The notes under the pieces were generated by a model that saw only the letters and a list, made by a program, of their open reading frames with translations, did no database searches and had not been told where the DNA came from. DNA of 64,000 nucleotides, taken from Botryllus schlosseri. Its lineage: Eukaryota. Of the stretch, positions 377-55,135 are shown piece after piece (position 1 is the stretch's first letter; each line of letters begins with the position of its first letter). The translations under genes and the position numbers were made by a program. The stretch spans positions 11,222,001-11,286,000 of the forward strand of contig CM119381.1 of NCBI GenBank assembly GCA_051294905.1, written 5' to 3'.

Positions 377-735
377 CCTCACAAGCATTCCTCTAAATAA
401 TTCTGTAAACATCCCGTCCGCACGAATCACAACTTGTTTCAAAGCTGAAACTTGCCCTGTACTGGCAGGGTCTTTTTCCACCTAAAATCGTGTACATTTC
501 AATTGCATAGCAACCCTTGTTTGAATTTTAACACCGAAATTTCAAACGCAACAGCATGGATACAAAATCCAAATATTTGTATAGAGACTAACCTCAATAG
601 TGATTTTTGGAGTGTTCTTGCAGTCTGAATCCAGCAGTAGATATCTACAAGAGGCGCTGAACTCGTATTCTCCAGCATCAAACGTTTCAAAATGTCTTCC
701 GTTAATTAATCCGCACCACTTCTCCGTTACAGAGG
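377..735 (-). CDS. Start of a von Willebrand factor type D domain (exons 593-735 and 377-481)
   Basis: Exon 593-735 gives [48 protein letters not shown], matching the vWD opening C..G..H..TFD...Y.F...C.Y.L...C. Phase-0 exon 377-481 gives [35 protein letters not shown] and is followed by a GTAAGC donor. Confidence 0.8.
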
Positions 736-6700: not shown

Positions 6701-9700
6701 GATATGACGAAAAGAGGTAATCAGGTAGGTCATTTTTAAATCGATTATCGATATTTTGTAGTAATGCATTCCAGATGATAGGTCCTGAGTATTGTCATAT
6801 CTCTCTCCGTCAGATTTTCTCTAGAAATAATAGTTGCAGAAAGTAAAGAAGTTATACCGTCCAAACTATCAGTAATTGTGATTGGAAGCTTCTTGGGATC
6901 CGATATAACCAGTTTCTCTGGTGCTTCCAGCACTAAATGGAACGTTTCATTTCCTTCCAAAACTGGATTTATTTCATCGTCGAGAATAGTGATGGTTATA
7001 GTTGCGGTGTCGTCGCCTGGTTGGAAACTAATTGTTTCTTCTAGGTCTTCAAAGTCTTCTGATTCTGTGATTGGATGATGAGGATATAGCGCTTCTGTTG
7101 TATGCCATGTAATGAGTCTTACCTTTGGCTGAATCTGGTTTTGAGACCACCTTTACTTTACCAGGCATCCCCAAGTCTCCTTGTCGTACTACTGTTATAT
7201 TGACTTCACCGATGTTTTCGGATACTGTCATTTTAGAGTGCTTGAAAGCAACGGTTGGTGCTGATGAGATACAGAGACAAAAGATGTAGGGAATGACAAT
7301 TTTTTCAGAACAAAGTCATATAGTTACTGGTTGGTTCTTTCTCCGTTATCGTAATATTCAGTATCTCGGGATCTACTACAAAGGCGTCTTCGGGATCTTT
7401 CAAAACGAGACGGAAAATCTCATCTCCTTCTCCAGCTACATTGTCAACGACTATTTGAATTGGAACTGGAATTTCTTCTTGCCCAGCATCAAACGTTACA
7501 ACTTCATCAACTCGGAGGTAGTCCGAAGAATCTATATTATGACAAGATGCAGTGCATTATTAGTATTTTTATTAGTGCTTTTCCTACAAAATGGAGAAAA
7601 TTCAGCATTGGTGATGAGATTCGGTGAAAAAGAAGACGGAAAAATATAAAAGATTCAAACATGAACAGAATCGAACGCATATCCAGTAATAATAATTCAC
7701 CTGTGGCAGAATTAGGCTCTCCTGTGCTGTTAGATACCACTTTCACTGTAGATGAACCAGAGAGGTCTCCTTCTCTGCGTACTTTTACTTCGAACAAGCC
7801 AATACTTTCAGGAACGCTCAACTTTGTGTTTTTGAATGATACCGCGGGCTCTGAATTGGTGCAAATATTAAGCTGGCTGAAGGGGTCGCAAATTTTGAAT
7901 AAAAGCAGAAATAAGATAACCCCTCTGTGTAATGTATTTATGCATGTAACATTTATGCAATATGATTGAAGAGACTCGTGGAGGTACAGCACGCAATCGC
8001 AAAATATATTCATATTGAAATAGATCCAGATATTTTCGGCTGACACTTGTCAGGTGTAGGGCTGGGCACAATGATTCCAGTACTCGAATCTGAATCGAGT
8101 ATTAATTTCAATGATTCGAGTCGAGTACTAAAAGACCAGTTTTTCGAGTACTGAAATTATACGCTTATCGCCACTGAAAGTTAATTTATCAACGAGAATT
8201 ATAGTTTCCATGCTAATTTTCACTGTTGCAGCCTTGAAGCCTTGATTGGCGATATCGTAGTATACGAAAAATGTAATACAAAGCTATGAATGTTGCTGGA
8301 CGTAGCGCATTTCTGAAGTCATGATTATTGCACAACATTGTCACAAAGTGGAATGAAATCAGTATGGTCGAAAAAATACCGAAGCATCATTTATGAGATG
8401 GGTATCAGACATTATATTCTTTGTGGTGGCCTAAACGGTACATATTTGAACTTCAGATGCATTACATTATGTTATGACGTCATAATGGGTGATACTCGAT
8501 TACTCGACTTGACGCATATTCCGTGATTCAGAATCGAATCACTCAGGTACTCGATTTTGCCCAGCCCTAGTCAGGTGTAATATGGCGACACCCGCATAAA
8601 AATGTGGATTTTTATGCCTGGATTATTTGAATTTTTGTGCTTGTGATGACATAATCGGTAGTAAGACCGTTGATGTGCAATATTCTTCTGAATTCTCTAC
8701 TAGTTGCTGACTACCCGATGAGTTTCAGCAAAAAATATTTGGGTTCATGATAATAATCAATTGCATATTGCATAATTGATTCCTTGACTGATATCGTAAT
8801 TGAATCATACCGTCTGTTTCGTCAGTGATTCTGATCAAAATTCTTTCTGGATTGGATATCACAACTTGGTCGGGTTTCTCTAGTACAAGATGAAAGGTTT
8901 CATTTCCTTCTCTAATCGGTTTCGCTGTGTCGTCTAAAATTGTCACGGTCACAATGGCTGCATCTTGTCCAGGCTTGAATTTGATAGCTTCTACAAGCTT
9001 CTCGTAATCTTCGGCCTCTGTTGTTGATAACGATGAGAGTGGTATCATTGCTTTCATTCCTGACACGACATAAGCTGTACCTTTAGCAGAACTAGGTTCT
9101 GAAGTGACGGTGATTTTCCCGGGCACGGATACATCTCCTCTTCTAACCAATGGAACTTGGATTGTGTTGATGTTTTCAGATACAGTGATTTCATTGTACT
9201 TGAATGAGACAAATGAACCTTGGAGGCAAAAGTAATGAGTTGACATAAGGCTGTTTGCATGTAATTCAAATAAAATCATCAGTTAAAAAAGCGGTTCAAA
9301 GCAGCAATGTTAGGGTGTCAATTTTCCATATAAAGCAGATTTGAACTAGGACTTTAGTTTAAATAGGAGCTCAATCCACAACTACATGTTTTCAAGTCAA
9401 ATCAGAGAGTCTGTTTGTTTAACCCATCGAAATTTACAGAGCTTGTATTAGGACGCAAAGAGGCCAAAAAAGTTACATCTGCTAAAGGAAAAAAATGGGA
9501 AAATTTTATTGTGCTTCAATATTTTTCAGATTATATCAACATGTTATCTTTATCATAATATTATTATAACATCGATACAAAAATAAAGGAATGTTATGTA
9601 ACTTAACATTACATGCAAAAATTTACACACTTCTGATTTACTATGATTTAAAGTTGAACAAAATAACAAATGTTTGTAAGTCAAACAACGAATACGAAAA

Positions 9701-12700
9701 CACTGCATTGAGACGCAGAATTGCGATTACCGGTGTCTGTAACCGTCTTTTTATCATCTTTATCATCAATGATAATCTTGGCCTTCTCCGGCATAGTGAT
9801 AAGAGCCTTTGTTGGATCTTGCAGAAGCAAATCGAATGCTTCTGAGTTTTCAAAAACCGGATTGATTTCATCATTCAGAATTTCGATTTGGACAGGCTGT
9901 GTGGTTTCACCAGCTTTGAACTCAACAGTCACCTGGACTCTATTGAAATCCTCCATTTCTGCAGTTCGAAGAGATTATATATTACATATCACCATCAAAC
10001 CTATGACATTGTTAAATTACCTGTAGCGGCATACGGATCAGTTCTAATTTGTGATACGACTTTAACGGTTGATGGTTGTGATGTGTCACCGTCACGCAAG
10101 ACGTTTACCAGCAATGTTCCATAATTTTCAGACACTTTATACTCCATGTATTCGAATTTGATTCCTTTAAAAGATATCCCAATTATTTGCATTGAATGAC
10201 GAAAGAATTACAAATTTACTACCCGGCAGAACTGACGACACATAATCAGATGATTCTTTTGCGGTATCTGAAAAAAAAAACTCTTGCAATATTGGAAATG
10301 GTACGATTTGAAAGTAGTGGACAAAAACATCAAGAAATCCACCCAATATTTTGATGTGAATTACAAAAGTAATGTTGAGATATTGCCAATACGTCCCGAA
10401 AATCAGAGAAATTGATTAGAACTATCGCAGTGTAAAAACTTCAATGAAAAAAAGTTTTTGAATATATTGGACATATTATACATAAGAAAACGATTATGAG
10501 GATTACGCAAGATTACCATCATCTTTTGCATCGTTAATGACAACTTTTGTCTCTTCAGGCATAGCAATACGAGCATTATCCGGACTGTCGAATATTAAGT
10601 TGAATGATTCTTTGCCTTCTTTGACAGGGTCCTCCGGATCGTCCATGATGGTTATTGTAAGAAAGACTTCCTCTTGTCCAATAGAAAATTGGATGGAGTT
10701 GTCGACTTTTAGAAAGTCAATGGCTTCTGCACGAAAGGAAGACAGTAATTAAAGAAAAAGTACAGATATTTCAGACAAATTTGTTCAAACCAGTAGCTTT
10801 CTTGGGATTATCTGACGGCACGGACAAAATTTTGACAGCAGATGGCATATCCAAAGACCCCTGACGAAGAACAGGAACTTGCAAAGTACCAATATTTTCA
10901 GGAACATCATACAATGTATGCTTGAAAGATATAGTTGGAGCTGTTTAATAAAAACATATGTTATAATCGAGATTGTGATATGAAATGAAAGATGAACGAA
11001 CTGTTTGAAACGTCTGGTTTCAGAGAATCCTTGATAACGATCTTTGCCTTTTCGGGCATTGTTACAGTGGCTTTGTCGGGATCGTACAAGACCAAATCAA
11101 AGCTTTCGGGCTCTTCTGTTAAGCTATCGTCTGTGACTTTAACTACAATAGGCTGTGTGGTCTCTCCTGGTTGGAATTCGACCGTCTCATCAACTTCTTC
11201 GAAATCTTGACCCTCTGCAAAATTGACCGAATGAAGTCAAATATTCCTACCACAAAACTCAATGCCTCTCAAACCTTTGGCTGCATTAGGTTCGTGCCTC
11301 GGTTGCGATTTGACCTTCACCGTTGCAGGCTTAGATGAATCACCTTCCCGAACGACAGTTACAACCAACTGACCAGTTTCTTCAGTGACGTCGTATTCAG
11401 GCGAGCTAAACTTTACTTCTAAAAATCATCACAGTACATCAGCAGTTGTGAAAAACTAACGAAATCTAAATGCTTACTAGGCATGTTGTCCTCAACATAG
11501 TCGTTGGATGGTGTGGCTTTAGCTAAAAGTAGAACACGCACAGTTATGGAGATTCAAGGACGAAATAACGAAAAAAGAGATGGGAATAAGGAAAATTGAA
11601 CAACTAATTACCGTCTTCTTTTTCGTCATCGATGATTATCTTTGTCTCTTCGTATGGTATTACTACCGCATTTGTAGGTTCTTTGAATACCAAATTGAAC
11701 GATTCTGGACCTTCTTTGATAGGATTCGAATCGTCGTTGACAATTGTAACAGTAAGAGGATATTTGTCTTGTCCTGCGGAAAACTCAATGACCTCATCGA
11801 CTTTAACATAGTCACTCGTCTCTGTGAGTATAACAACACTGGTTGTGGAAAAATGTGCATAAAGTGATTCAGTTTTCAGACCTGTAGCTTCTTTGGGATT
11901 TTCAGAAGGCATCGACTGGATTCGTACGCTAGTAGGCTTTGTCAAAGAACCTTTACGTAAGATGATCACATCGAAGGTACCAACATCTTCCAAGACCTGA
12001 TATGTTTCTTCAGCGAATGAAATTGTCGGCGCTTGAATGAAAAGCATATCCAATTAGCGAGAGAACAATAAAGAGAGATTCTGTACAACGTACTGTCAGA
12101 CACATCAGGCGTCGCGGAATCCGTGATAACAATCTTTGCCTTTTCGGGCATTGTTACAGTGGCTTTGTCTGGATCGTACAAGACCAAATCAAAGCTTTCG
12201 GGCTCTTCTGTTAAACTATCGTCTGTGACTTTAACTACAATAGGCTGTGTGGTCTCTCCTGGTTGGAATTCGACTGTCTCATCAACTTCTTCGAAATCTT
12301 GACCCTCTGCAAAATTGACCGAATGAAGTCAAATATTACTACCACTAAAGTCAATGCCTCTCAAACCTTTGGCTGCATTAGGTTCGTGCCTTGGTTGCGA
12401 TTTGACCTTCACCGTTGCAGGCTTAGATGAATCACCTTCCCGAACGACAGTTACAACCAACTGACCAGTTTCTTCAGTGACGTCGTATTCAGGCGAGCTA
12501 AACTTTACTTCTAAAAATCATCACAGTACATCAGCAGTTGTGAAAAACTAACGAAATCTAAATGCTTACTAGGCATGTTGTCCTCAACATAGTCGTTGGA
12601 TGGTGTGGCTTTAGCTAAAAGTAGAACACGCACAGTTATGGAGATTCAAGGACGAAATAACGAAAAAAGAGATGGGAATAAGGAAAATTGAACAACTAAT

Positions 12701-15700
12701 TACCGTCTTCTTTTTCGTCATCGATGATTATCTTTGTCTCTTCGTATGGTATTACTACCGCATTTGTAGGTTCTTTGAATACCAAATTGAACGATTCTGG
12801 ACCTTCTTTGATAGGATTCGAATCGTCGTTGACAATTGTAACAGTAAGAGGATATTTGTCTTGTCCTGCGGAAAACTCAATGACCTCATCGACTTTAACG
12901 TAGTCACTCGTCTCTGTGAGTATAACAACACTGGTTGTGGAAAAATGTGCATAAAGTGATTCAGTTTTCAGACCTGTAGCTTCTTTGGGATTTTCAGAAG
13001 GCATCGACTGGATTCGTACGCTAGTAGGCTTTGTCAAAGAACCTTTACGTAAGATGATCACATCGAAGGTACCAACATCTTCCAAGACCTCATATGTTTC
13101 TTCAGCGAATGAAATTGTCGGCGCTTGAATGAAAAGCACATCCAATTAGCGAGAGAACAATAAAGAGAGATTCTGTAAAACGTACTGTCGGACACATCAG
13201 GCTTCGCGGAATCCGTGATAACAATCTTTGCCTTTTCGGGCATTGTTACAGTGGCTTTGTCTGGATCGTACAAGACCAAATCAAAGCTTTCGGGCTCTTC
13301 TGTTAAGCTATCGTCTGTGACTTTAACTACAATAGGCTGTGTGGTCTCTCCTGGTTGGAATTCGACTGTTTCATCAACTTCTTCGAAATCTTGACCCTCT
13401 GCAAAATTGACCGAATGAAGTCAAATATTACTACCACAAAAGTCAATGCCTCTCAAACCTTTGGCTGCATTAGGTTCGTGCCTCGGTTGCGATTTGACCT
13501 TCACCGTTGCAGGCTTAGATGAATCACCTTCCCGAACGACAGTTACAACCAACTGACCAGTTTCTTCAGTGACGTCGTATTCAGGCGAGCTAAACTTTAC
13601 TTCTAAAAATCATCACAGTACATCAGCAGTTGTGAAAAACTAACGAAATCTAAATGCTTACTAGGCATGTTGTCCTCAACATAGTCGTTGGATGGTGTGG
13701 CTTTAGCTAAAAATAGAACACGCACAGTTATGGAGATTCAAGGACGAAATAACGAAAAAAGAGATGGGAATAAGGAAAATTGAACAACTAATTACCGTCT
13801 TCTTTTTCGTCATCGATGATTATCTTTGTCTCTTCGTATGGTATTACTACCGCATTTGTAGGTTCTTTGAATACCAAATTGAACGATTCTGGACCTTCTT
13901 TGATAGGATTCGAATCGTCGTTGACAATTGTAACAGTAAGAGGATATTTGTCTTGTGCTGCGGAAAACTCAATGACCTCATCGACTTTAACGTAGTCACT
14001 CGTCTCTGTGAGTATAACAACACTGGTTGTGGAAAAATGTGCATAAAGTGATTCAGTTTTCAGACCTGTAGCTTCTTTGGGATTTTCAGAAGGCATCGAC
14101 TGGATTCGTACGCTAGTAGGCTTTGTCAAAGAACCTTTACGTAAGATGATCACATCGAAGGTACCAACATCTTCCAAGACCTCATATGTTTCTTCAGCGA
14201 ATGAAATTGTCGGCGCTTGAATGAAAAGCACATCCAATTAGCGAGAGAACAATAAAGAGAGATTCTGTAAAACGTACTGTCGGACACATCAGGCTTCGCC
14301 GAATCCGTGATAACAATCTTTGCCTTTTCGGGCATTGTTACAGTGGCTTTGTCTGGATCGTACAAGACCAAATCAAAGCTTTCGGGCTCTTCTGTTAAGC
14401 TATCGTCTGTGACTTTAACTACAATAGGCTGTGTGGTCTCTCCTGGTTGGAATTCGACTGTCTCATCAACTTCTTCGAAATCTTGACCCTCTGCAAAATT
14501 GACCGAATGAAGTCAAATATTACTACCACAAAAGTCAATGCCTCTCAAACCTTTGGCTGCATTAGGTTCGTGCCTCGGTTGCGATTTGACCTTCACCGTT
14601 GCAGGCTTAGATGAATCACCTTCCCGAACGACAGTTACAACCAACTGACCAGTTTCTTCAGTGACGTCGTATTCAGGCGAGCTAAACTTTACTTCTAAAA
14701 ATCATCACAGTACATCAGCAGTTGTGAAAAACTAACGAAATCTAAATGCTTACTAGGCATGTTGTCCTCAACATAGTCGTTGGATGGTGTGGCTTTAGCT
14801 AAAAGTAGAACACGCACAGTTATGGAGATTCAAGGACGAAATAACGAAAAAAGAGATGGGAATAAGGAAAATTGAACAACTAATTACCGTCTTCTTTTTC
14901 GTCATCGATGATTATCTTTGTCTCTTCGTATGGTATTACTACCGCATTTGTAGGTTCTTTGAATACCAAATTGAACGATTCTGGACCTTCTTTGATAGGA
15001 TTCGAATCGTCGTTGACAATTGTAACAGTAAGAGGATATTTGTCTTGTCCTGCGGAAAACTCAATGACCTCATCGACTTTAACGTAGTCACTCGTCTCTG
15101 TGAGTATAACAACACTGGTTGTGGAAAAATGTGCATAAAGTGATTCAGTTTTCAGACCTGTAGCTTCTTTGGGATTTTCAGAAGGCATCGACTGGATTCG
15201 TACGCTAGTAGGCTTTGTCAAAGAACCTTTACGTAAGATGATCACATCGAAGGTACCAACATCTTCCAAGACCTCATATGTTTCTTCAGCGAATGAAATT
15301 GTCGGCGCTTGAATGAAAAGCACATCCAATTAGCGAGAGAACAATAAAGAGAGATTCTGTAAAACGTACTGTCGGACACATCAGGCTTCGCGGAATCCGT
15401 GATAACAATCTTTGCCTTTTCGGGCATTGTTACAGTGGCTTTGTTTGGATCGTACAAGACCAAATCAAAGCTTTCGGGCTCTTCTGTTAAGCTATCGTCT
15501 GTGACTTTAACTACAATAGGCTGTGTGGTCTCTTCTGGTTGGAATTCGACTGTCTCATCAACTTCTTCGAAATCTTGACCCTCTGCAAAATTGACCGAAT
15601 GAAGTCAAATATTACTACCACAAAAGTCAATGCCTCTCAAACCTTTGGCTGCATTAGGTTCGTGCCTCGGTTGCGATTTGACCTTCACCGTTGCAGGCTT

Positions 15701-18700
15701 AGATGAATCACCTTCCCGAACGACAGTTACAACCAACTGACCAGTTTCTTCTGCGACGTCGTATTCAGGCGAGCTAAACTTTACTTCTAAAAATCATCAC
15801 AGTACATCAGCAGTTGTGAAAAACTAACGAAATCTAAATGCTTACTAGGCATGTTGTCCTCAACATAGTCGTTGGATGGTGTGGCTTTAGCTAAAAGTAG
15901 AACACGCACAGTTATGGAGATTCAAGGACGAAATAACGAAAAAAGAGATGGGAATAAGGAAAATTGAACAACTAATTACCGTCTTCTTTTTCGTCATCGA
16001 TGATTATCTTTGTCTCTTCGTATGGTATTACTACCGCATTTGTAGGTTCTTTGAATACCAAATTGAACGATTCTGGACCTTCTTTGATAGGATTCGAATC
16101 GTCGTTGACAATTGTAACAGTAAGAGGATATTTGTCTTGTCCTGCGGAAAACTCAATGACCTCATCGACTTTAACGTAGTCACTCGTCTCTGTGAGTATA
16201 ACAACACTGGTTGTGGAAAAATGTGCATAAAGTGATTCAGTTTTCAGACCTGTAGCTTCTTTGGGATTTTCAGAAGGCATCGACTGGATTCGTACGCTAG
16301 TAGGCTTTGTCAAAGAACCTTTACGTAAGATGATCACATCGAAGGTACCAACATCTTCCAAGACCTCATATGTTTCTTCAGCGAATGAAATTGTCGGCGC
16401 TTGAATGAAAAGCACATCCAATTAGCGAGAGAACAATAAAGAGAGATTCTGTAAAACGTACTGTCGGACACATCAGGCTTCGCGGAATCCGTGATAACAA
16501 TCTTTGCCTTTTCGGGCATTGTTACAGTGGCTTTGTCTGGATCGTACAAGACCAAATCAAAGCTTTCGGGCTCTTCTGTTAAGCTATCGTCTGTGACTTT
16601 AACTACAATAGGCTGTGTGGTCTCTTCTGGTTTGAATTCGACTGTCTCATCAACTTCTTCGAAATCTTGACCCTCTGCAAAATTGACCGAATGAAGTCAA
16701 ATATTACTACCACAAAAGTCAATGCCTCTCAAACCTTTGGCTGCATTAGGTTCGTGCCTCGGTTGCGATTTGACCTTCACCGTTGCAGGCTTAGATGAAT
16801 CACCTTCCCGAACGACAGTTACAACCAACTGACCAGTTTCTTCAGCGACGTCGTATTCAGGCGAGCTAAACTTTACTTCTAAAAATCATCACAGTACATC
16901 AGCAGTTGTGAAAAACTAACGAAATCTAAATGCTTACTAGGCATGTTGTCCTCAACATAGTCCTTGGATGGTGTGGCTTTAGCTAAAAGTAGAACACGCA
17001 CAGTTATGGAGATTCAAGGACGAAATAACGAAAAAAGAGATGGGAATAAGGAAAATTGAACAACTAATTACCGTCTTCTTTTTCGTCATCGATGATTATC
17101 TTTGTCTCTTCGTATGGTATTACTACCGCATTTGTAGGTTCTTTGAATACCAAATTGAACGATTCTGGACCTTCTTTGATAGGATTCGAATCGTCGTTGA
17201 CAATTGTAACAGTAAGAGGATATTTGTCTTGTCCTGCGGAAAACTCAATGACCTCATCGACTTTAACGTAGTCACTCGTCTCTGTGAGTATAACAACACT
17301 GGTTGTGGAAAAATGTGCATAAAGTGATTCAGTTTTCAGACCTGTAGCTTCTTTGGGATTTTCAGAAGGCATCGACTGGATTCGTACGCTAGTAGGCTTT
17401 GTCAAAGAACCTTTACGTAAGATGATCACATCGAAGGTACCAACATCTTCCAAGACCTCATATGTTTCTTCAGCGAATGAAATTGTCGGCGCTTGAATGA
17501 AAAGCACATCCAATTAGCGAGAGAACAATAAAGAGAGATTCTGTAAAACGTACTGTCGGACACATCAGGCTTCGCGGAATCCGTGATAACAATCTTTGCC
17601 TTTTCGGGCATTGTTACAGTGGCTTTGTCTGGATCGTACAAGACCAAATCAAAGCTTTCGGGCTCTTCTGTTAAGCTATCGTCTGTGACTTTAACTACAA
17701 TAGGCTGTGTGGTCTCTCCTGGTTGGAATTCGACTGTTTCATCAACTTCTTCGAAATCTTGACCCTCTGCAAAATTGACCGAATGAAGTCAAATATTACT
17801 ACCACAAAAGTCAATGCCTCTCAAACCTTTGGCTGCATTAGGTTCGTGCCTCGGTTGCGATTTGACCTTCACCGTTGCAGGCTTAGATGAATCACCTTCC
17901 CGAACGACAGTTACAACCAACTGACCAGTTTCTTCAGTGACGTCGTATTCAGGCGAGCTAAACTTTACTTCTAAAAATCATCACAGTACATCAGCAGTTG
18001 TGAAAAACTAACGAAATCTAAATGCTTACTAGGCATGTTGTCCTCAACATAGTCGTTGGATGGTGTGGCTTTAGCTAAAAGTAGAACACGCACAGTTATG
18101 GAGATTCAAGGACGAAATAACGAAAAAAGAGATGGGAATAAGGAAAATTGAACAACTAATTACCGTCTTCTTTTTCGTCATCGATGATTATCTTTGTCTC
18201 TTCGTATGGTATTACTACCGCATTTGTAGGTTCTTTGAATACCAAATTGAACGATTCTGGACCTTCTTTGATAGGATTCGAATCGTCGTTGACAATTGTA
18301 ACAGTAAGAGGATATTTGTCTTGTGCTGCGGAAAACTCAATGACCTCATCGACTTTAACGTAGTCACTCGTCTCTGTGAGTATAACAACACTGGTTGTGG
18401 AAAAATGTGCATAAAGTGATTCAGTTTTCAGACCTGTAGCTACTTTGGGATTTTCAGAAGGCATCGACTGGATTCGTACGCTAGTAGGCTTTGTCAAAAA
18501 ACCTTTACGTAAGATGATCACATCGAAGGTACCAACATCTTCCAAGACCTCATATGTTTCTTCAGCGAATGAAATTGTCGGCGCTTGAATGAAAAGCACA
18601 TCCAATTAGCGAGAGAACAATAAAGAGAGATTCTGTAAAACGTACTGTCGGACACATCAGGCTTCGCCGAATCCGTGATAACAATCTTTGCCTTTTCGGG

Positions 18701-21700
18701 CATTGTTACAGTGGCTTTGTCTGGATCGTACAAGACCAAATCAAAGCTTTCGGGCTCTTCAGTTAAGCTATCGTCTGTGACTTTAACTACAATAGGCTGT
18801 GTGGTCTCTCCTGGTTGGAATTCGACTGTCTCATCAACTTCTTCGAAATCTTGACCCTCTGCAAAATTGACCGAATGAAGTCAAATATTACTACCACAAA
18901 AGTCAATGCCTCTCAAACCTTTGGCTGCATTAGGTTCGTGCCTCGGTTGCGATTTGACCTTCACCGTTGCAGGCTTAGATGAATCACCTTCCCGAACGAC
19001 AGTTACAACCAACTGACCAGTTTCTTCAGTGACGTCGTATTCAGGCGAGCTAAACTTTACTTCTAAAAATCATCACAGTACATCAGCAGTTGTGAAAAAC
19101 TAACGAAATCTAAATGCTTACTAGGCATGTTGTCCTCAACATAGTCGTTGGATGGTGTGGCTTTAGCTAAAAGTAGAACACGCACAGTTATGGAGATTCA
19201 AGGACGAAATAACGAAAAAAGAGATGGGAATAAGGAAAATTGAACAACTAATTACCGTCTTCTTTTTCGTCATCGATGATTATCTTTGTCTCTTCGTATG
19301 GTATTACTACCGCATTTGTAGGTTCTTTGAATACCAAATTGAACGATTCTGGACCTTCTTTGATAGGATTCGAATCGTCGTTGACAATTGTAACAGTAAG
19401 AGGATATTTGTCTTGTCCTGCGGAAAACTCAATGACCTCATCGACTTTAACGTAGTCACTCGTCTCTGTGAGTATAACAACACTGGTTGTGGAAAAATGT
19501 GCATAAAGTGATTCAGTTTTCAGACCTGTAGCTTCTTTGGGATTTTCAGAAGGCATCGACTGGATTCGTACGCTAGTAGGCTTTGTCAAAGAACCTTTAC
19601 GTAAGATGATCACATCGAAGGTACCAACATCTTCCAAGACCTCATATGTTTCTTCAGCGAATGAAATTGTCGGCGCTTGAATGAAAAGCACATCCAATTA
19701 GCGAGAGAACAATAAAGAGAGATTCTGTAAAACGTACTGTCGGACACATCAGGCTTCGCGGAATCCGTGATACCAATCTTTGCCTTTTCGGGCATTGTTA
19801 CAGTGGCTTTGTCTGGATCGTACAAGACCAAATCAAAGCTTTCGGGCTCTTCTGTTAAGCTATCGTCTGTGACTTTAACTACAATAGGCTGTGTGGTCTC
19901 TCCTGGTTGGAATTCGACTGTCTCATCAACTTCTTCGAAATCTTGACCCTCTGCAAAATTGACCGAATGAAGTCAAATATTACTACCACAAAAGTCAATG
20001 CCTCTCAAACCTTTGGCTGCATTAGGTTCGTGCCTCGGTTGCGATTTGACCTTCACCGTTGCAGGCTTAGATGAATCACCTTCCCGAACGACAGTTACAA
20101 CCAACTGACCAGTTTCTTCAGTGACGTCGTATTCAGGCGAGCTAAACTTTACTTCTAAAAATCATCACAGTACATCAGCAGTTGTGAAAAACTAACGAAA
20201 TCTAAATGCTTACTAGGCATGTTGTCCTCAACATAGTCGTTGGATGGTGTGGCTTTAGCTAAAAGTAGAACACGCACAGTTATGGAGATTCAAGGACGAA
20301 ATAACGAAAAAAGAGATGGGAATAAGGAAAATTGAACAACTAATTACCGTCTTCTTTTTCGTCATCGATGATTATCTTTGTCTCTTCGTATGGTATTACT
20401 ACCGCATTTGTAGGTTCTTTGAATACCAAATTGAACGATTCTGGACCTTCTTTGATAGGATTCGAATCGTCGTTGACAATTGTAACAGTAAGAGGATATT
20501 TGTCTTGTCCTGCGGAAAACTCAATGACCTCATCGACTTTAACGTAGTCACTCGTCTCTGTGAGTATAACAACACTGGTTGTGGAAAAATGTGCATAAAG
20601 TGATTCAGTTTTCAGACCTGTAGCTTCTTTGGGATTTTCAGAAGGCATCGACTGGATTCGTACGCTAGTAGGCTTTGTCAAAGAACCTTTACGTAAGATG
20701 ATCACATCGAAGGTACCAACATCTTCCAAGACCTCATATGTTTCTTCAGCGAATGAAATTGTCGGCGCTTGAATGAAAAGCACATCCAATTAGCGAGAGA
20801 ACAATAAAGAGAGATTCTGTAAAACGTACTGTCGGACACATCAGGCTTCGCGGAATCCGTGATAACAATCTTTGCCTTTTCGGGCATTGTTACAGTGGCT
20901 TTGTCTGGATCGTACAAGACCAAATCAAAGCTTTCGGGCTCTTCTGTTAAGCTATCGTCTGTGACTTTAACTACAATAGGCTGTGTGGTCTCTCCTGGTT
21001 GGAATTCGACTGTCTCATCAACTTCTTCGAAATCTTGACCCTCTGCAAAATTGACCGAATGAAGTCAAATATTACTACCACAAAAGTCAATGCCTCTCAA
21101 ACCTTTGGCTGCATTAGGTTCGTGCCTCGGTTGCAATTTGACCTTCACCGTTGCAGGCTTAGATGAATCACCTTCCCGAACGACAGTTACAACCAACTGA
21201 CCAGTTTCTTCAGTGACGTCGTATTCAGGCGAGCTAAACTTTACTTCTAAAAATCATCACAGTACATCAGCAGTTGTGAAAAACTAACGAAATCTAAATG
21301 CTTACTAGGCATGTTGTCCTCAACATAGTCGTTGGATGGTGTGGCTTTAGCTAAAAGTAGAACACGCACAGTTATGGAGATTCAAGGACGAAATAACGAA
21401 AAAAGAGATGGGAATAAGGAAAATTGAACAACTAATTACCGTCTTCTTTTTCGTCATCGATGATTATCTTTGTCTCTTCGTATGGTATTACTACCGCATT
21501 TGTAGGTTCTTTGAATACCAAATTGAACGATTCTGGACCTTCTTTGATAGGATTCGAATCGTCGTTGACAATTGTAACAGTAAGAGGATATTTGTCTTGT
21601 CCTGCGGAAAACTCAATGACCTCATCGACTTTAACGTAGTCACTCGTCTCTGTGAGTATAACAACACTGGTTGTGGAAAAATGTGCATAAAGTGATTCAG

Positions 21701-24700
21701 TTTTCAGACCTGTAGCTTCTTTGGGATTTTCAGAAGGCATCGACTGGATTCGTACGCTAGTAGGCTTTGTCAAAGAACCTTTACGTAAGATGATCACATC
21801 GAAGGTACCAACATCTTCCAAGACCTCATATGTTTCTTCAGCGAATGAAATTGTCGGCGCTTGAATGAAAAGCACATCCAATTAGCGAGAGAACAATAAA
21901 GAGAGATTCTGTAAAACGTACTGTCGGACACATCAGGCTTCGCGGAATCCGTGATAACAATCTTTGCCTTTTCGGGCATTGTTACAGTGGCTTTGTCTGG
22001 ATCGTACAAGACCAAATCAAAGCTTTCGGGCTCTTCTGTTAAGCTATCGTCTGTGACTTTAACTACAATAGGCTGTGTGGTCTCTCCTGGTTGGAATTCG
22101 ACTGTCTCATCAACTTCTTCGAAATCTTGACCCTCTGCAAAATTGACCGAATGAAGTCAAATATTACTACCACAAAAGTCAATGCCTCTCAAACCTTTGG
22201 CTGCATTAGGTTCGTGCCTCGGTTGCGATTTGACCTTCACCGTTGCAGGCTTAGATGAATCACCTTCCCGAACGACAGTTACAACCAACTGACCAGTTTC
22301 TTCAGTGACGTCGTATTCAGGCGAGCTAAACTTTACTTCTAAAAATCATCACAGTACATCAGCAGTTGTGAAAAACTAACGAAATCTAAATGCTTACTAG
22401 GCATGTTGTCCTCAACATAGTCGTTGGATGGTGTGGCTTTAGCTAAAAGTAGAACACGCACAGTTATGGAGATTCAAGGACGAAATAACGAAAAAAGAGA
22501 TGGGAATAAGGAAAATTGAACAACTAATTACCGTCTTCTTTTTCGTCATCGATGATTATCTTTGTCTCTTCGTATGGTATTACTACCGCATTTGTAGGTT
22601 CTTTGAATACCAAATTGAACGATTCTGGACCTTCTTTGATAGGATTCGAATCGTCGTTGACAATTGTAACAGTAAGAGGATATTTGTCTTGTGCTGCGGA
22701 AAACTCAATGACCTCATCGACTTTAACGTAGTCACTCGTCTCTGTGAGTATAACAACACTGGTTGTGGAAAAATGTGCATAAAGTGATTCAGTTTTCAGA
22801 CCTGTAGCTTCTTTGGGATTTTCAGAAGGCATCGACTGGATTCGTACGCTAGTAGGCTTTGTCAAAGAACCTTTACGTAAGATGATCACATCGAAGGTAC
22901 CAACATCTTCCAAGACCTCATATGTTTCTTCAGCGAATGAAATTGTCGGCGCTTAAATGAAAAGCACATCCAATTAGCGAGAGAACAATAAAGAGAGATT
23001 CTGTAAAACGTACTGTCGGACACATCAGGCTTCGCCGAATCCGTGATAACAATCTTTGCCTTTTCGGGCATTGTTACAGTGGCTTTGTCTGGATCGTACA
23101 AGACCAAATCAAAGCTTTCGGGCTCTTCTGTTAAGCTATCGTCTGTGACTTTAACTACAATAGGCTGTGTGGTCTCTCCTGGTTGGAATTCGACTGTCTC
23201 ATCAACTTCTTCGAAATCTTGACCCTCTGCAAAATTGACCGAATGAAGTCAAATATTACTACCACAAAAGTCAATGCCTCTCAAACCTTTGGCTGCATTA
23301 GGTTCGTGCCTCGGTTGCGATTTGACCTTCACCGTTGCAGGCTTAGATGAATCACCTTCCCGAACGACAGTTACAACCAACTGACCAGTTTCTTCAGTGA
23401 CGTCGTATTCAGGCGAGCTAAACTTTACTTCTAAAAATCATCACAGTACATCAGCAGTTGTGAAAAACTAACGAAATCTAAATGCTTACTAGGCATGTTG
23501 TCCTCAACATAGTCGTTGGATGGTGTGGCTTTAGCTAAAAGTAGAACACGCACAGTTATGGAGATTCAAGGACGAAATAACGAAAAAAGAGATGGGAATA
23601 AGGAAAATTGAACAACTAATTACCGTCTTCTTTTTCGTCATCGATGATTATCTTTGTCTCTTCGTATGGTATTACTACCGCATTTGTAGGTTCTTTGAAT
23701 ACCAAATTGAACGATTCTGGACCTTCTTTGATAGGATTCGAATCGTCGTTGACAATTGTAACAGTAAGAGGATATTTGTCTTGTCCTGCGGAAAACTCAA
23801 TGACCTCATCGACTTTAACGTAGTCACTCGTCTCTGTGAGTATAACAACACTGGTTGTGGAAAAATGTGCATAAAGTGATTCAGTTTTCAGACCTGTAGC
23901 TTCTTTGGGATTTTCAGAAGGCATCGACTGGATTCGTACGCTAGTAGGCTTTGTCAAAGAACCTCTACGTAAGATGATCACATCGAAGGTACCAACATCT
24001 TCCAAGACCTCATATGTTTCTTCAGCGAATGAAATTGTCGGCGCTTGAATGAAAAGCACATCCAATTAGCGAGAGAACAATAAAGAGAGATTCTGTAAAA
24101 CGTACTGTCGGACACATCAGGCTTCGCGGAATCCGTGATAACAATCTTTGCCTTTTCGGGCATTGTTACAGTGGCTTTGTCTGGATCGTACAAGACCAAA
24201 TCAAAGCTTTCGGGCTCTTCTGTTAAGCTATCGTCTGTGACTTTAACTACAATAGGCTGTGTGGTCTCTTCTGGTTGGAATTCGACTGTCTCATCAACTT
24301 CTTCGAAATCTTGACCCTCTGCAAAATTGACCGAATGAAGTCAAATATTACTACCACAAAAGTCAATGCCTCTCAAACCTTTGGCTGCATTAGGTTCGTG
24401 CCTCGGTTGCGATTTGACCTTCACCGTTGCAGGCTTAGATGAATCACCTTCCCGAACGACAGTTACAACCAACTGACCAGTTTCTTCAGCGACGTCGTAT
24501 TCAGGCGAGCTAAACTTTACTTCTAAAAATCATCACAGTACATCAGCAGTTGTGAAAAACTAACGAAATCTAAATGCTTACTAGGCATGTTGTCCTCAAC
24601 ATAGTCGTTGGATGGTGTGGCTTTAGCTAAAAGTAGAACACGCACAGTTATGGAGATTCAAGGACGAAATAACGAAAAAAGAGATGGGAAAAAGGAAAAT

Positions 24701-27700
24701 TGAACAACTAATTACCGTCTTCTTTTTCGTCATCGATGATTATCTTTGTCTCTTCGTATGGTATTACTACCGCATTTGTAGGTTCTTTGAATACCAAATT
24801 GAACGATTCTGGACCTTCTTTGATAGGATTCGAATCGTCGTTGACAATTGTAACAGTAAGAGGATATTTGTCTTGTGCTGCGGAAAACTCAATGACCTCA
24901 TCGACTTTAACGTAGTCACTCGTCTCTGTGAGTATAACAACACTGGTTGTGGAAAAATGTGCATAAAGTGATTCAGTTTTCAGACCTGTAGCTTCTTTGG
25001 GATTTTCAGAAGGCATCGACTGGATTCGTACGCTAGTAGGCTTTGTCAAAGAACCTTTACGTAAGATGATCACATCGAAGGTACCAACATCTTCCAAGAC
25101 CTCATATGTTTCTTCAGCGAATGAAATTGTCGGCGCTTGAATGAAAAGCACATCCAATTAGCGAGAGAACAATAAAGAGAGATTCTGTAAAACGTACTGT
25201 CGGACACATCAGGCTTCGCCGAATCCGTGATAACAATCTTTGCCTTTTCGGGCATTGTTACAGTGGCTTTGTCTGGATCGTACAAGACCAAATCAAAGCT
25301 TTCGGGCTCTTCTGTTAAGCTATCGTCTGTGACTTTAACTACAATAGGCTGTGTGGTCTCTCCTGGTTGGAATTCGACTGTCTCATCAACTTCTTCGAAA
25401 TCTTGACCCTCTGCAAAATTGACCGAATGAAGTCAAATATTACTACCACAAAAGTCAATGCCTCTCAAACCTTTGGCTGCATTAGGTTCGTGCCTCGGTT
25501 GCGATTTGACCTTCACCGTTGCAGGCTTAGATGAATCACCTTCCCGAACGACAGTTACAACCAACTGACCATTTTCTTCAGTGACGTCGTATTCAGGCGA
25601 GCTAAACTTTACTTCTAAAAATCATCACAGTACATCAGCAGTTGTGAAAAACTAACGAAATCTAAATGCTTACTAGGCATGTTGTCCTCAACATAGTCGT
25701 TGGATGGTGTGGCTTTAGCTAAAAGTAGAACACGCACAGTTATGGAGATTCAAGGACGAAATAACGAAAAAAGAGATGGGAATAAGGAAAATTGAACAAC
25801 TAATTACCGTCTTCTTTTTCGTCATCGATGATTATCTTTGTCTCTTCGTATGGTATTACTACCGCATTTGTAGGTTCTTTGAATACCAAATTGAACGATT
25901 CTGGACCTTCTTTGATAGGATTCGAATCGTCGTTGACAATTGTAACAGTAAGAGGATATTTGTCTTGTCCTGCGGAAAACTCAATGACCTCATCGACTTT
26001 AACGTAGTCACTCGTCTCTGTGAGTATAACAACACTGGTTGTGGAAAAATGTGCATAAAGTGATTCAGTTTTCAGACCTGTAGCTTCTTTGGGATTTTCA
26101 GAAGGCATCGACTGGATTCGTACGCTAGTAGGCTTTGTCAAAGAACCTTTACGTAAGATGATCACATCGAAGGTACCAACATCTTCCAAGACCTCATATG
26201 TTTCTTCAGCGAATGAAATTGTCGGCGCTTGAATGAAAAGCACATCCAATTAGCGAGAGAACAATAAAGAGAGATTCTGTAAAACGTACTGTCGGACACA
26301 TCAGGCTTCGCGGAATCCGTGATAACAATCTTTGCCTTTTCGGGCATTGTTACAGTGCCTTTGTCTGGATCGTACAAGACCAAATCAAAGCTTTCGGGCT
26401 CTTCTGTTAAGCTATCGTCTGTGACTTTAACTACAATAGGCTGTGTGGTCTCTCCTGGTTGGAATTCGACTGTCTCATCAACTTCTTCGAAATCTTGACC
26501 CTCTGCAAAATTGACCGAATGAAGTCAAATATTACTACCACAAAAGTCAATGCCTCTCAAACCTTTGGCTGCATTAGGTTCGTGCCTCGGTTGCGATTTG
26601 ACCTTCACCGTTGCAGGCTTAGATGAATCACCTTCCCGAACGACAGTTACAACCAACTGACCAGTTTCTTCAGTGACGTCGTATTCAGGCGAGCTAAACT
26701 TTACTTCTAAAAATCATCACAGTACATCAGCAGTTGTGAAAAACTAACGAAATCTAAATGCTTACTAGGCATGTTGTCCTCAACATAGTCGTTGGATGGT
26801 GTGGCTTTAGCTAAAAGTAGAACACGCACAGTTATGGAGATTCAAGGACGAAATAACGAAAAAAGAGATGGGAATAAGGAAACTTGAACAACTAATTACC
26901 GTCTTCTTTTTCGTCATCGATGATTATCTTTGTCTCTTCGTATGGTATTACTACCGCATTTGTAGGTTCTTTGAATACCAAATTGAACGATTCTGGACCT
27001 TCTTTGATAGGATTCGAATCGTCGTTGACAATTGTAACAGTAAGAGGATATTTGTCTTGTGCTGCGGAAAACTCAATGACCTCATCGACTTTAACGTAGT
27101 CACTCGTCTCTGTGAGTATAACAACACTGGTTGTGGAAAAATGTGCATAAAGTGATTCAGTTTTCAGACCTGTAGCTTCTTTGGGATTTTCAGAAGGCAT
27201 CGACTGGATTCGTACGCTAGTAGGCTTTGTCAAAGAACCTTTACGTAAGATGATCACATCGAAGGTACCAACATCTTCCAAGACCTCATATGTTTCTTCA
27301 GCGAATGAAATTGTCGGCGCTTGAATGAAAAGCACATCCAATTAGCGAGAGAACAATAAAGAGAGATTCTGTAAAACGTACTGTCGGACACATCAGGCTT
27401 CGCCGAATCCGTGATAACAATCTTTGCCTTTTCGGGCATTGTTACAGTGGCTTTGTCTGGATCGTACAAGACCAAATCAAAGCTTTCGGGCTCTTCTGTT
27501 AAGCTATCGTCTGTGACTTTAACTACAATAGGCTGTGTGGTCTCTCCTGGTTGGAATTCGACTGTCTCATCAACTTCTTCGAAATCTTGACCCTCTGCAA
27601 AATTGACCGAATGAAGTCAAATATTACTACCACAAAAGTCAATGCCTCTCAAACCTTTGGCTGCATTAGGTTCGTGCCTCGGTTGCGATTTGACCTTCAC

Positions 27701-30700
27701 CGTTGCAGGCTTAGATGAATCACCTTCCCGAACGACAGTTACAACCAACTGACCAGTTTCTTCAGTGACGTCGTATTCAGGCGAGCTAAACTTTACTTCT
27801 AAAAATCATCACAGTACATCAGCAGTTGTGAAAAACTAACGAAATCTAAATGCTTACTAGGCATGTTGTCCTCAACATAGTCGTTGGATGGTGTGGCTTT
27901 AGCTAAAAGTAGAACACGCACAGTTATGGAGATTCAAGGATGAAATAACGAAAAAAGAGATGGGAATAAGGAAAATTGAACAACTAATTACCGTCTTCTT
28001 TTTCGTCATCGATGATTATCTTTGTCTCTTCGTATGGTATTACTACCGCATTTGTAGGTTCTTTGAATACCAAATTGAACGATTCTGGACCTTCTTTGAT
28101 AGGATTCGAATCGTCGTTGACAATTGTAACAGTAAGAGGATATTTGTCTTGTCCTGCGGAAAACTCAATGACCTCATCGACTTTAACGTAGTCACTCGTC
28201 TCTGTGAGTATAACAACACTGGTTGTGGAAAAATGTGCATAAAGTGATTCAGTTTTCAGACCTGTAGCTTCTTTGGGATTTTCAGAAGGCATCGACTGGA
28301 TTCGTACGCTAGTAGGCTTTGTCAAAGAACCTTTACGTAAGATGATCACATCGAAGGTACCAACATCTTCCAAGACCTCATATGTTTCTTCAGCGAATGA
28401 AATTGTCGGCGCTTGAATGAAAAGCACATCCAATTAGCGAGAGAACAATAAAGAGAGATTCTGTAAAACGTACTGTCGGACACATCAGGCTTCGCGGAAT
28501 CCGTGATAACAATCTTTGCCTTTTCGGGCATTGTTACAGTGGCTTTGTCTGGATCGTACAAGACCAAATCAAAGCTTTCGGGCTCTTCTGTTAAGCTATC
28601 GTCTGTGACTTTAACTACAATAGGCTGTGTGGTCTCTCCTGGTTGGAATTCGACTGTCTCATCAACTTCTTCGAAATCTTGACCCTCTGCAAAATTGACC
28701 GAATGAAGTCAAATATTACTACCACAAAAGTCAATGCCTCTAAAACCTTTGGCTGCATTAGGTTCGTGCCTCGGTTGCGATTTGACCTTCACCGTTGCAG
28801 GCTTAGATGAATCACCTTCCCGAACGACAGTTACAACCAACTGACCAGTTTCTTCAGTGACGTCGTATTCAGGCGAGCTAAACTTTACTTCTAAAAATCA
28901 TCACAGTACATCAGCAGTTGTGAAAAACTAACGAAATCTAAATGCTTACTAGGCATGTTGTCCTCAACATAGTCGTTGGATGGTGTGGCTTTAGCTAAAA
29001 GTAGAACACGCACAGTTATGGAGATTCAAGGACGAAATAACGAAAAAAGAGATGGGAATAAGGAAAATTGAACAACTAATTACCGTCTTCTTTTTCGTCA
29101 TCGATGATTATCCTTGTCTCTTCGTATGGTATTACTACCGCATTTGTAGGTTCTTTGAATACCAAATTGAACGATTCTGGACCTTCTTTGATAGGATTCG
29201 AATCGTCGTTGACAATTGTAACAGTAAGAGGATATTTGTCTTGTCCTGCGGAAAACTCAATGACCTCATCGACTTTAACGTAGTCACTCGTCTCTGTGAG
29301 TATAACAACACTGGTTGTGGAAAAATGTGCATAAAGTGATTCAGTTTTCAGACCTGTAGCTTCTTTGGGATTTTCAGAAGGCGTCGACCGGATTCTTACT
29401 CTACTAGGCTTTGTCAAAGATCCTGTACGTAAGATGATCACATCTATAGTACCAACATTTTCCATGACCTCGTATAAGTCTTCTTCGAACGACATCTTCG
29501 GTGCTTAAATTCAGATGAATAAAAATCAAAATTATCATCAAAAATATATTGGTGCTCACATATTTCAATAATGACTGTTCAAGTATAGCATGGTAGTTTT
29601 AATTTGTCTTGTTCTAGTTAGGCATTGATGTGATTCTTACCAGACTGTTTCTGCATTTCCGTTTCCCCTGCGCTTGATTCAGCTGAAATATAGATAATAT
29701 AGATGTATTTTTTCCAAATTGTAATTTCACAACCAAGAATAAAATGAATGATAAGTAACTATTTTATTATGTGAGAGTAGCAATGTTTTAATATACCATG
29801 TAAAGCAATTTTTCGCCCAAAGCTAAAAATGTGGAGAAAGTAAAGATTTCTACAGCTTTTTTTATAATATACGATATTTTCAACAGACAGTATTTCCAGT
29901 TTTTGATATTGCGGATCCAATTGCTTAATTCAAAGGTACAAAAAAAGATATGCAAGATAAATGAGCAGTATTTTTAGATCACACGCAATTGTGGATTTGG
30001 AATATCATACATGTGTCATGTTAGGCTGACAATGGAATCTATAATAACAGGTTTGTAATACACAGCTGTACCTGCGTATACTGTTATGATTGTGAAATGA
30101 AGTGTAAAGTTCTTACGCTCATTATCAGGTGTGATCACTACATCACTTTCGATTTGATCACCAAGAACCATGCCATTGCTAGGCTTCGACAAAACAGCAA
30201 TGAATTTTTCGACGTCTTCTTGAATTTCGTCTAGAACAATTCGAATGGCGCACACAGCTTCCTTTTGATCTGTGAGAATTGCACACAATTTTAATTAATG
30301 CGTTCAAAAGATCTAAGCAATTCCGAAAATTGACTGACGATTAGCGTCACTTCATAAGTTGATAACTATGTTATTAAATATGCAATAAATAAGCTTTACT
30401 ACTAGGAAGTATCATATTTCAGTAGCTGTAAGTCATTGCCAAACTGAAGCAGTAGACGTAATATCAAGAGAGTATTTGACAAAGCATATGACTTTGAAAG
30501 ATATGTTGCCGTACTTGAGAGATATGATACTAGCAACAGTCTGACCTGCTTTAAAGGAGACGACACTTTCGTCTGTAACAAGCCGCGGCTCGAAATCTTG
30601 GTTTTCCAACGCCGTGAGCTGCCTGGTGTAGCAAACCACAGTGGCTGCATTTTTTATGTCGCCATCTCGGACAACACTGACATTGGCCAGTCCGCTTTTT

Positions 30701-54700: not shown

Positions 54701-55104
54701 TTTATGTAATCTTAAAATATAATGTTACCAATGCATCCATCTTTCTTTTCCGACATCTCAAACCCGTCAATGCACAGGCAAATATAACTTCCGATATTAT
54801 TGACGCATTTAGAATTGTTCATACACGGGCTCATTACTTCATCACTGCATTCATCAATATCTTGAAAAATATAGAGTCAGCATTAGTCACCAAGAAATTT
54901 TACTATGTCAAATTATATACCGATGCATGTCTTTCCAGATTTGTCCTGTTTGATATATCCATCCTTGCAAACGCACATGTAAGAGCCAACAGTGTTGGCG
55001 CAGTCAGCTTGTTTGCCACACGGTGATGTCAAGCATTCGACAATATCTAGAAATACCAATTTTGCTGCATTACTATGCACAACTAATTTGACTATCAAGT
55101 GACC

Positions 55105-55135
<31 letters not shown>

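Follow-up and report, generated by a model that had tools for sequence, protein, structure and literature searches.

The 64,000-nucleotide stretch of the Botryllus schlosseri genome analyzed here (the window; contig CM119381.1, positions 11,222,001 to 11,286,000 of the forward strand, assembly GCA_051294905.1) contains 17 head-to-tail copies of a 1092-bp unit, each made up of several exons and introns and encoding a pair of Calx-beta domains. The reading favored here, with a probability of roughly 0.75, is that these copies form a real intragenic array within one giant gene on the minus strand, and that they are kept alike by unequal crossing-over and gene conversion. The product of this gene would be a secreted, calcium-binding matrix or adhesion protein. 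As such, the array is a new example of a multi-exon coding repeat of the kind represented by KIV-2 of LPA.

Two analyses of the window agree on the structure of the array. A repeat search recovered all 17 copies with every start-to-start spacing (16 of 16) equal to exactly 1092, while base-by-base identity at a lag of 1092 rises from approximately 0.3 to between 0.98 and 1.0 at position ~11025 and drops back at ~28390. Together with the list of mismatches, these data define a homogenized tandem tract of 16.9 units, without a single indel, from ~11025 to 29477 on the minus strand. In the register of the gene, the 17 units occupy 10940 to 29503 on the same strand, such that unit U1 corresponds to 29503-28412, U17 to 12031-10940, and the start of unit k to 29503-(k-1)*1092. 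Neighboring copies are ~99.5% identical, interior units differ from the consensus at zero to five bases per 1092, and the mean pairwise difference among interior units is ~5 per 1092 (~0.46%). The window contains no N. Long, open, protein-like frames are found at the array on the minus strand only, and exons of the same gene, on the same strand, adjoin the array on both sides. An Rfam search of the whole window produced no matches; Tandem Repeats Finder likewise returned nothing, a result that is uninformative on a 1092-bp array because the longest period considered was 500. The array is therefore present as described in an earlier note on this DNA, which was based on sequence alone and which reported 17 exactly spaced, indel-free copies. 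The accompanying claim that no unit carries a stop or has lost a GT/AG likewise holds in 17 of 17 units under the exon model adopted here, while the description of the copies as near-identical applies to the interior units and only in part to U1 and U17, which are partly diverged. Similarly, the tandem exon-plus-intron unit proposed in that note was borne out, with the amendment that each unit comprises four or five exons rather than one exon and one intron.

The anatomy of the unit is best described using U14 as a reference and proceeding from high to low coordinates on the minus strand. Domain A, the first of the two Calx-beta domains, is encoded by E1 (15158..15307; 150 nt, phase 1), which specifies its N-terminal half, and by E2 (14888..15097; 210 nt), which specifies its C-terminal half, the two being separated by I1 (15098-15157; 60 nt, in frame and stop-free). 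Intron I2 (14799-14887; 89 nt) is followed by a candidate mini-exon, E3m (14754..14798; 45 nt, phase 1-1), encoding a 15-residue linker, and by I3 (14695-14753; 59 nt). Domain B is then encoded by E4 (14551..14694; 144 nt), corresponding to its N-terminal half, I4 (14491-14550; 60 nt), and E5 (14278..14490; 213 nt), corresponding to its C-terminal half together with the linker to the next unit, and I5 (14216..14277; 62 nt) joins successive units. These assignments derive from the sequence itself and from splice landmarks, supplemented by Pfam and, for all exons, by conservation in L001, a homologous repeat from a related taxon that is described below; E2 was additionally placed by alignment to Drosophila CALX. 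Each of the five introns is in phase 1, the two domains are interrupted at the same internal position, and in all 17 units every intron has GT..AG and the frame stays open with or without the mini-exon. The exons total 762 nt (254 aa) when E3m is included and 717 nt (239 aa) when it is not.

Both domains exceed the Pfam cut-off of 27 bits for Calx-beta (PF03160): domain A reaches 44.4 bits and domain B reaches 48.5 bits in its C-terminal half, with the N-terminal half by itself reaching 19.4 bits. Within domain A, an LED motif and the acidic motifs NDD..E..E and IIDDE, the latter two located in E2, line up with the positions of the calcium sites in CBD1 of Drosophila CALX (3rb5/3rb7); domain B ends in ITDS and has no C-terminal acidic triplet. 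The encoded unit has a pI of 4.24, contains 56 Asp/Glu versus 25 Lys/Arg, and has neither Cys nor N-x-S/T. The proposal in the earlier note of an in-frame, two-domain cassette of 239 aa thus stands with regard to frame and domain content, and its length is likelier to be 254 aa. Intron I1 is in frame and without stops in all 17 units as well as in L001; its retention would add 20 residues in frame, and chance is a plausible explanation for the lack of stops. I1 was considered as coding sequence and rejected, given that the paralogous I4, which interrupts domain B at the equivalent point, contains a stop and that a 20-residue insertion at this point would break the Calx-beta profile.

Evidence concerning the mini-exon comes from two comparisons. 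In all units of the array E3m is flanked by AG and GT, and in L001 its 45-nt length, its frame, and both splice signals are kept, with the 3' 28 nt being identical, whereas the introns surrounding it are 62-80% identical and contain indels. In addition, an old, diverged unit flanking the array has a 45-nt phase-1 exon at the equivalent position (10223-10267), lying between cag| and |gt, which, like its counterpart in the array, encodes 15 residues. Because it is kept both in a related taxon and in the old flanking copy, E3m is probably a real exon, in which case the unit would consist of five exons and 254 aa. The conservation of E3m also indicates that very small phase-1 exons form part of the design of this gene.

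If the array is subject to exchange of whole units, introns should be as uniform as exons, and this is what is observed. Among U2-U16, variable sites account for 21 of 762 exon positions (2.76%) and 8 of 330 intron positions (2.42%; Fisher p = 0.84), in agreement with the claim of the earlier note that introns are as homogeneous as exons. Most of these variable sites (24 of 29) are singletons. Shared variants are ordered along the array: a linked pair is carried by U2/3, U4/5, U6/7, U10/11, and U14/15, a different variant is shared by U11 and U15, and a further one by U5, U12, and U13, a pattern that suggests duplications of two-unit and four-unit blocks. At the edges, identity to the unit falls to 82% over nucleotides 3-103 of E1 in U1 and to 75% over the final ~40 nt of U17, and for the Calx-beta exons beyond the array it is only 57-62%. 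Diverged end units are the expectation when exchange is confined to the interior of an array.

Copy number was assessed in raw reads by comparing four runs with window segment 6100-12090, which contains unique flank and exactly one unit. In X1, the source-sample run, which probably derives from the same sample as the assembly and is thus not an independent individual, single-copy flank has a word depth of 96.5 (contig 8682-11069) or 93.5-97.6 (other flank contigs), while two array contigs have depths of 1759.8 and 1691.6. The resulting ratio of 17.5-18.2, with the caveat applying to all such ratios that word depth is not copy number, matches the 16.9 assembled copies, and one of the array contigs crosses the head-to-tail junction. 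It follows that the assembly did not inflate the array, and the depth check for an artefact of one to three copies, proposed in the earlier note, instead shows the array to be real. X5, a different sample and one consisting of DNA, as its contigs contain introns, is heterozygous in the flank, with a reference-like haplotype at a depth of ~41 and a ~4%-diverged haplotype at 60-72. Its array contigs have depths of 984, 1102, and ~1364, placing the unit about 10-fold or more over flank and yielding ~9-13 copies per haplotype-equivalent when compared with the summed flank (~105-110) or ~12-17 when compared with twice 41. X5 therefore leans suggestively, short of proof, toward fewer copies than X1. 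The prediction of the earlier note that copy number is polymorphic is thus no more than suggested by the difference between X5 (~9-17) and X1 (~18). With regard to the flank itself (6100-10900), one X5 haplotype matches the window exactly, while the second shows 20 differences in 551 nt in one segment and 24 differences plus 6 gaps in 610 nt in another, an allelic divergence roughly eight times the divergence between array units.

The unit was also compared with its counterpart in a related taxon. A search with the protein of the E1-I1-E2 open frame identified P0001, with 83% identity, on a 1113-nt contig that occurs in three samples in three different rotations. The fetched copy, L001, has ends that overlap by 30 nt and forms a closed cycle with a period of 1083, which is what a short-read assembler would be expected to yield from a homogeneous tandem repeat. 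L001 can be aligned with the entire 1092-bp unit (84% identity). None of the five exons differs in length between the two, the ten splice dinucleotides are all conserved, there are no stops, and indels are confined to introns (I2, -12; I4, +1; I5, +2). Identity is 87% in exons and 76% in introns, and the coding comparison gives a dN of 0.071 and a dS of 0.443 (dN/dS 0.16). On the evidence of this alignment, purifying selection on the unit is shown, as would be seen for functional coding sequence.

Orthologs of flanking exons were also found in the relative, namely P0055 (matching 10506-10730) and P0101 (matching 6811-7231), each with 75% aa identity. The two are collinear on a single 4946-nt contig from the same sample series as L001. 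The end of this contig maps to ~11059, i.e., to the edge of the array, and the X1 flank contig ends at 11069, such that the relative's repeat apparently begins at the corresponding edge of this flank. A more distant relative, represented by L002 (L002:1-1395), has 62% aa identity to domain A. In L002 the end of a B-type domain is followed by an A-type domain and the start of a B-type domain, with an intervening intron that, at ~630 nt, is much longer; L002 is not a closed cycle and was rejected as evidence for an array.

Concerted evolution of the array is indicated by these data, because units diverge by ~0.5% within the genome (~0.46% in the array studied here) versus 16% between taxa and because unit-wide indels are fixed in each taxon. 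The earlier note had proposed recent amplification or concerted evolution on the grounds of intron-inclusive homogeneity, and the relative's own homogeneous repeat of the orthologous unit lends further weight to that proposal. Most likely, misaligned units undergo unequal crossing-over and gene conversion time and again, which keeps the copies alike; since whole units would be exchanged, introns included, introns would become as uniform as exons and indels would spread to all copies, while selection would persist on the coding parts. Each unit gained or lost through unequal exchange would alter the protein by two domains (254 aa, ~28 kDa), so that the stepwise change in protein length envisaged in the earlier note would hold as a whole-unit, in-frame step, with 254 aa being likelier than 239 aa. 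Such steps might, as that note proposed, tune the length of fibers or their calcium capacity. Calx-beta domains are Ig-like beta-sandwiches that bind calcium at their interdomain ends. We infer that the mRNA contains every unit and that copy number may vary between alleles; with all units spliced in, the array would contribute 34 near-identical, very acidic, Cys-free beta-sandwich domains, or ~4,300 aa and ~480 kDa, and these could act as a calcium-stiffened rod or spacer in a secreted fiber or adhesion molecule. Since all introns are phase 1, skipping of an exon or of a unit keeps the frame, and splicing could therefore also vary the length of the protein.

Several observations weigh against the interpretation outlined above. 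In two bulk RNA runs, X13 and X17, of which 6% and 13% of reads were sampled, no reads fell on flank exons, and only 2-3 reads fell on the array, all in one bin and one of them covering intron I4. No spliced peptides from this organism were found in two protein-database searches, and the use of individual exons, including the mini-exon, as well as the inclusion of all 17 units, would thus be argued from comparison only. Exon variants within U2-U16 comprise 14 nonsynonymous and 7 synonymous changes, such that the youngest changes within the array are not visibly filtered by selection. Moreover, the argument for a shared boundary is an indirect one, made from gene coordinates, and the relative's array is represented by the L001 cycle and the flank contig. 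Of the searches themselves, the 149-aa query matched only unspliced genomic open reading frames of relatives, and the E4 query returned no candidates from the protein database. Some older runs labeled as this organism contained 6-8% of the sampled words of the stretch. The best match in an exhaustive search, P0003 (3168 aa, 20 Calx-beta domains), is unnamed, has no tblastn match in the window at 1e-8, and was dropped; most other large matches were generic multi-Calx-beta proteins of 28-36% identity, one of them labeled RTX toxin-like, and were of no help in identifying the gene.

The low RNA signal and the lack of spliced peptides are what one would expect if the array were mostly missing from the mature protein, either because units are skipped or alternatively spliced, as occurs in the repeated regions of titin and nebulin, or because the gene is silent. 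The phase-1 introns, which would allow any exon or unit to be removed in frame, are compatible with skipping as well. We nevertheless judge this explanation improbable. The dN/dS of 0.16, along with the preservation of exon lengths and of ten splice signals relative to a taxon whose introns are 24% diverged, implies that at least some copies of the unit are translated, and it is on these features that the case for translation would rest; furthermore, none of the units has gained a stop or lost a splice site, and the RNA samples may lack the expressing tissue or stage. Far less credible is the notion that a repeat of few copies was over-expanded or wrongly resolved during assembly. Long, near-identical tandem repeats are a classic source of misassembly, and X1, being probably the same sample as the assembly, offers no independent check; against this stand the agreement between depth ratio and assembled copies in X1, the ordered pattern of the 29 variable sites by which copies in U2-U16 can be individually distinguished, and the excess of the unit over flank in the independent sample X5.

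A further possibility, which we consider unlikely but somewhat more plausible than those just described, is that one or two ancestral units were amplified recently and independently in the two lineages, in which case ongoing homogenization would not be needed. The preponderance of singletons gives a star-like pattern such as follows a fast, recent expansion, identity falls abruptly from 99.5% to ~60% at the flanks without a gradient, and divergence within the array lies far below the ~4% allelic divergence of the X5 flank, all of which would fit such a scenario. Conversely, the position at which the flank contig of the relative stops coincides with the edge of the array, so that at least a repeat junction seems to be shared, and it is less parsimonious to suppose that two lineages expanded the unit in parallel between identical boundaries. 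Both the ancestral-array and the independent-expansion explanations invoke unequal exchange and differ only in timing.

The array is embedded in a gene that extends past both ends of the window and whose recognizable exons all lie on the minus strand. From 5' to 3', the gene comprises Calx-beta exons that run off the window (58852..63347; HMM search, open frames, and Pfam), several dozen exons encoding calcium-binding EGF (cbEGF) domains (34246..57095; open frames, with Pfam EGF_CA scores of 66-77 bits in four samples), diverged Calx-beta exons 5' of the array (30523..33042; HMM search and Pfam), the array itself, the old, diverged A-B unit directly 3' of it (9753..10938; HMM, with 59-62% nucleotide identity by blastn), further diverged Calx-beta exons (888..9210; six-frame HMM search, with Pfam applied to 8728-9282), and the start of a VWD domain that again runs off the window (545..772; PF00094, 29.5 bits versus a cut-off of 22.9). 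No domains other than Calx-beta, cbEGF, and VWD were recognized in scans of the window, and the gene extends beyond it on both sides.

Several further features of this region were also recorded. An intron in the 3' flank contains, at 7900-8750, a very high-copy repeat with a word depth of 5e5-7e5 versus ~96 for single-copy sequence, a depth that implies several thousand genomic copies; the repeat occurs in many internal deletion variants, and transcripts of it are present in both RNA runs. Another repeat, located at 6500-6900, has a word depth of 1.4e4-2.8e4, and both are probably derived from transposons resembling miniature inverted-repeat transposable elements. The collinear flank contig of the relative is ~500-700 bp shorter across the repeat interval, consistent with the element being absent there. 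Lastly, the series of cbEGF exons is interrupted by a gap of ~1.7 kb (49610-51330) with non-EGF-like open frames on both strands, which may represent a large intron with an inserted element.

Arrays of this general type are familiar from several genes. The KIV-2 (kringle IV type 2) repeat of human LPA, which encodes apolipoprotein(a), the SRCR repeats of DMBT1, and the triplicate region of nebulin each consist of kilobase-scale units of exons and introns that are arranged head to tail and in frame, with introns as uniform as exons, and unequal exchange is the underlying mechanism; for KIV-2, copy-number polymorphism and a size-variable protein are documented. The array described here shares with KIV-2 the head-to-tail, in-frame arrangement of exon-plus-intron units and the homogenization of introns along with exons. 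It differs in that each unit packs five exons into 1.1 kb rather than two exons into 5.5 kb, in that its domains are Calx-beta rather than kringle or SRCR, and in that polymorphism is only suggested while a homogenized counterpart exists in a related taxon. Similarity within a species, diverged edges, fixed indels, and a periodicity of two and four units are likewise reminiscent of rDNA, histone clusters, and satellite higher-order repeats. In those arrays, however, the unit is a whole gene or non-coding DNA rather than a piece of one reading frame, as it is here, where copy number alters protein length as opposed to dosage.

Among Calx-beta proteins, the closest published analog is AqAFC of sponges, in which three repeats, each consisting of the exons and introns for two Calx-beta domains, are ~85% identical, with one of the three repeat units lying separately (Grice et al., 2017; PMC5400394). 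Within the AqAF family, 154 of 155 introns are phase 1, and the introns of a Xestospongia candidate average 62 bp (PMC5400394). Shared with AqAFC, therefore, are a unit of two Calx-beta domains that includes exons and introns, short phase-1 introns, and a large secreted protein with VWD or VWA partners; particular to the present gene are 17 contiguous units at 99.5%, a long cbEGF run, and a homogenized counterpart in a related taxon. Membership in the sponge aggregation factors (MAFp3/p4, AqAF) was considered and rejected, as members of that family lack a cbEGF run, the gene apparently comes from another lineage, and no Wreath domain is known here; none was seen in scans of the window, made with libraries that contained no Wreath model. 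The phase-1 Calx-beta modules common to the AqAFs and this gene thus represent shared construction rather than membership. Other extracellular Calx-beta proteins include FRAS1/FREM, sea-urchin ECM3, ADGRV1 (VLGR1), and integrin beta-4 (PMC11670116). While these matrix or adhesion proteins resemble the product of the present gene in having Calx-beta domains in long series, their domains are old and mutually diverged, whereas the array described here is young and homogenized, and no CSPG repeats, 7TM/GAIN module, or integrin head was seen in this window.

Concerted evolution is well established, as are multi-exon repeats within genes, and the array by itself does not constitute a new kind of biology. 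It is, rather, a clean case, with 17 units and 85 exons, no indels, a homogenized array in a relative, and measurable purifying selection, and for this reason rates of unequal exchange and gene conversion within a coding region should be directly estimable. On a practical level, the protein will come out thousands of residues too short in gene models and in assemblies of short reads, which is of relevance to catalogs of matrix and adhesion proteins. A more ambitious, and at present doubtful, proposal is that the array is a fast-turnover, copy-number-polymorphic length module of a giant extracellular Calx-beta/cbEGF/VWD protein, this being an individually variable adhesion or self/non-self surface molecule in a chordate lineage that shares its phase-1 Calx-beta modules with the sponge factors, and that the array was kept homogeneous across speciation. 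Were this to be the case, individuals or alleles would make fibers of different length and valency, and the gene would behave in a manner similar to the sponge aggregation factors. More generally, if copy number differs between alleles, the length of the protein would be set by recombination among repeats rather than by point mutation, which would make the array an invertebrate counterpart of LPA KIV-2 and would provide a small, easily studied genome in which recombination-set protein length can be examined.

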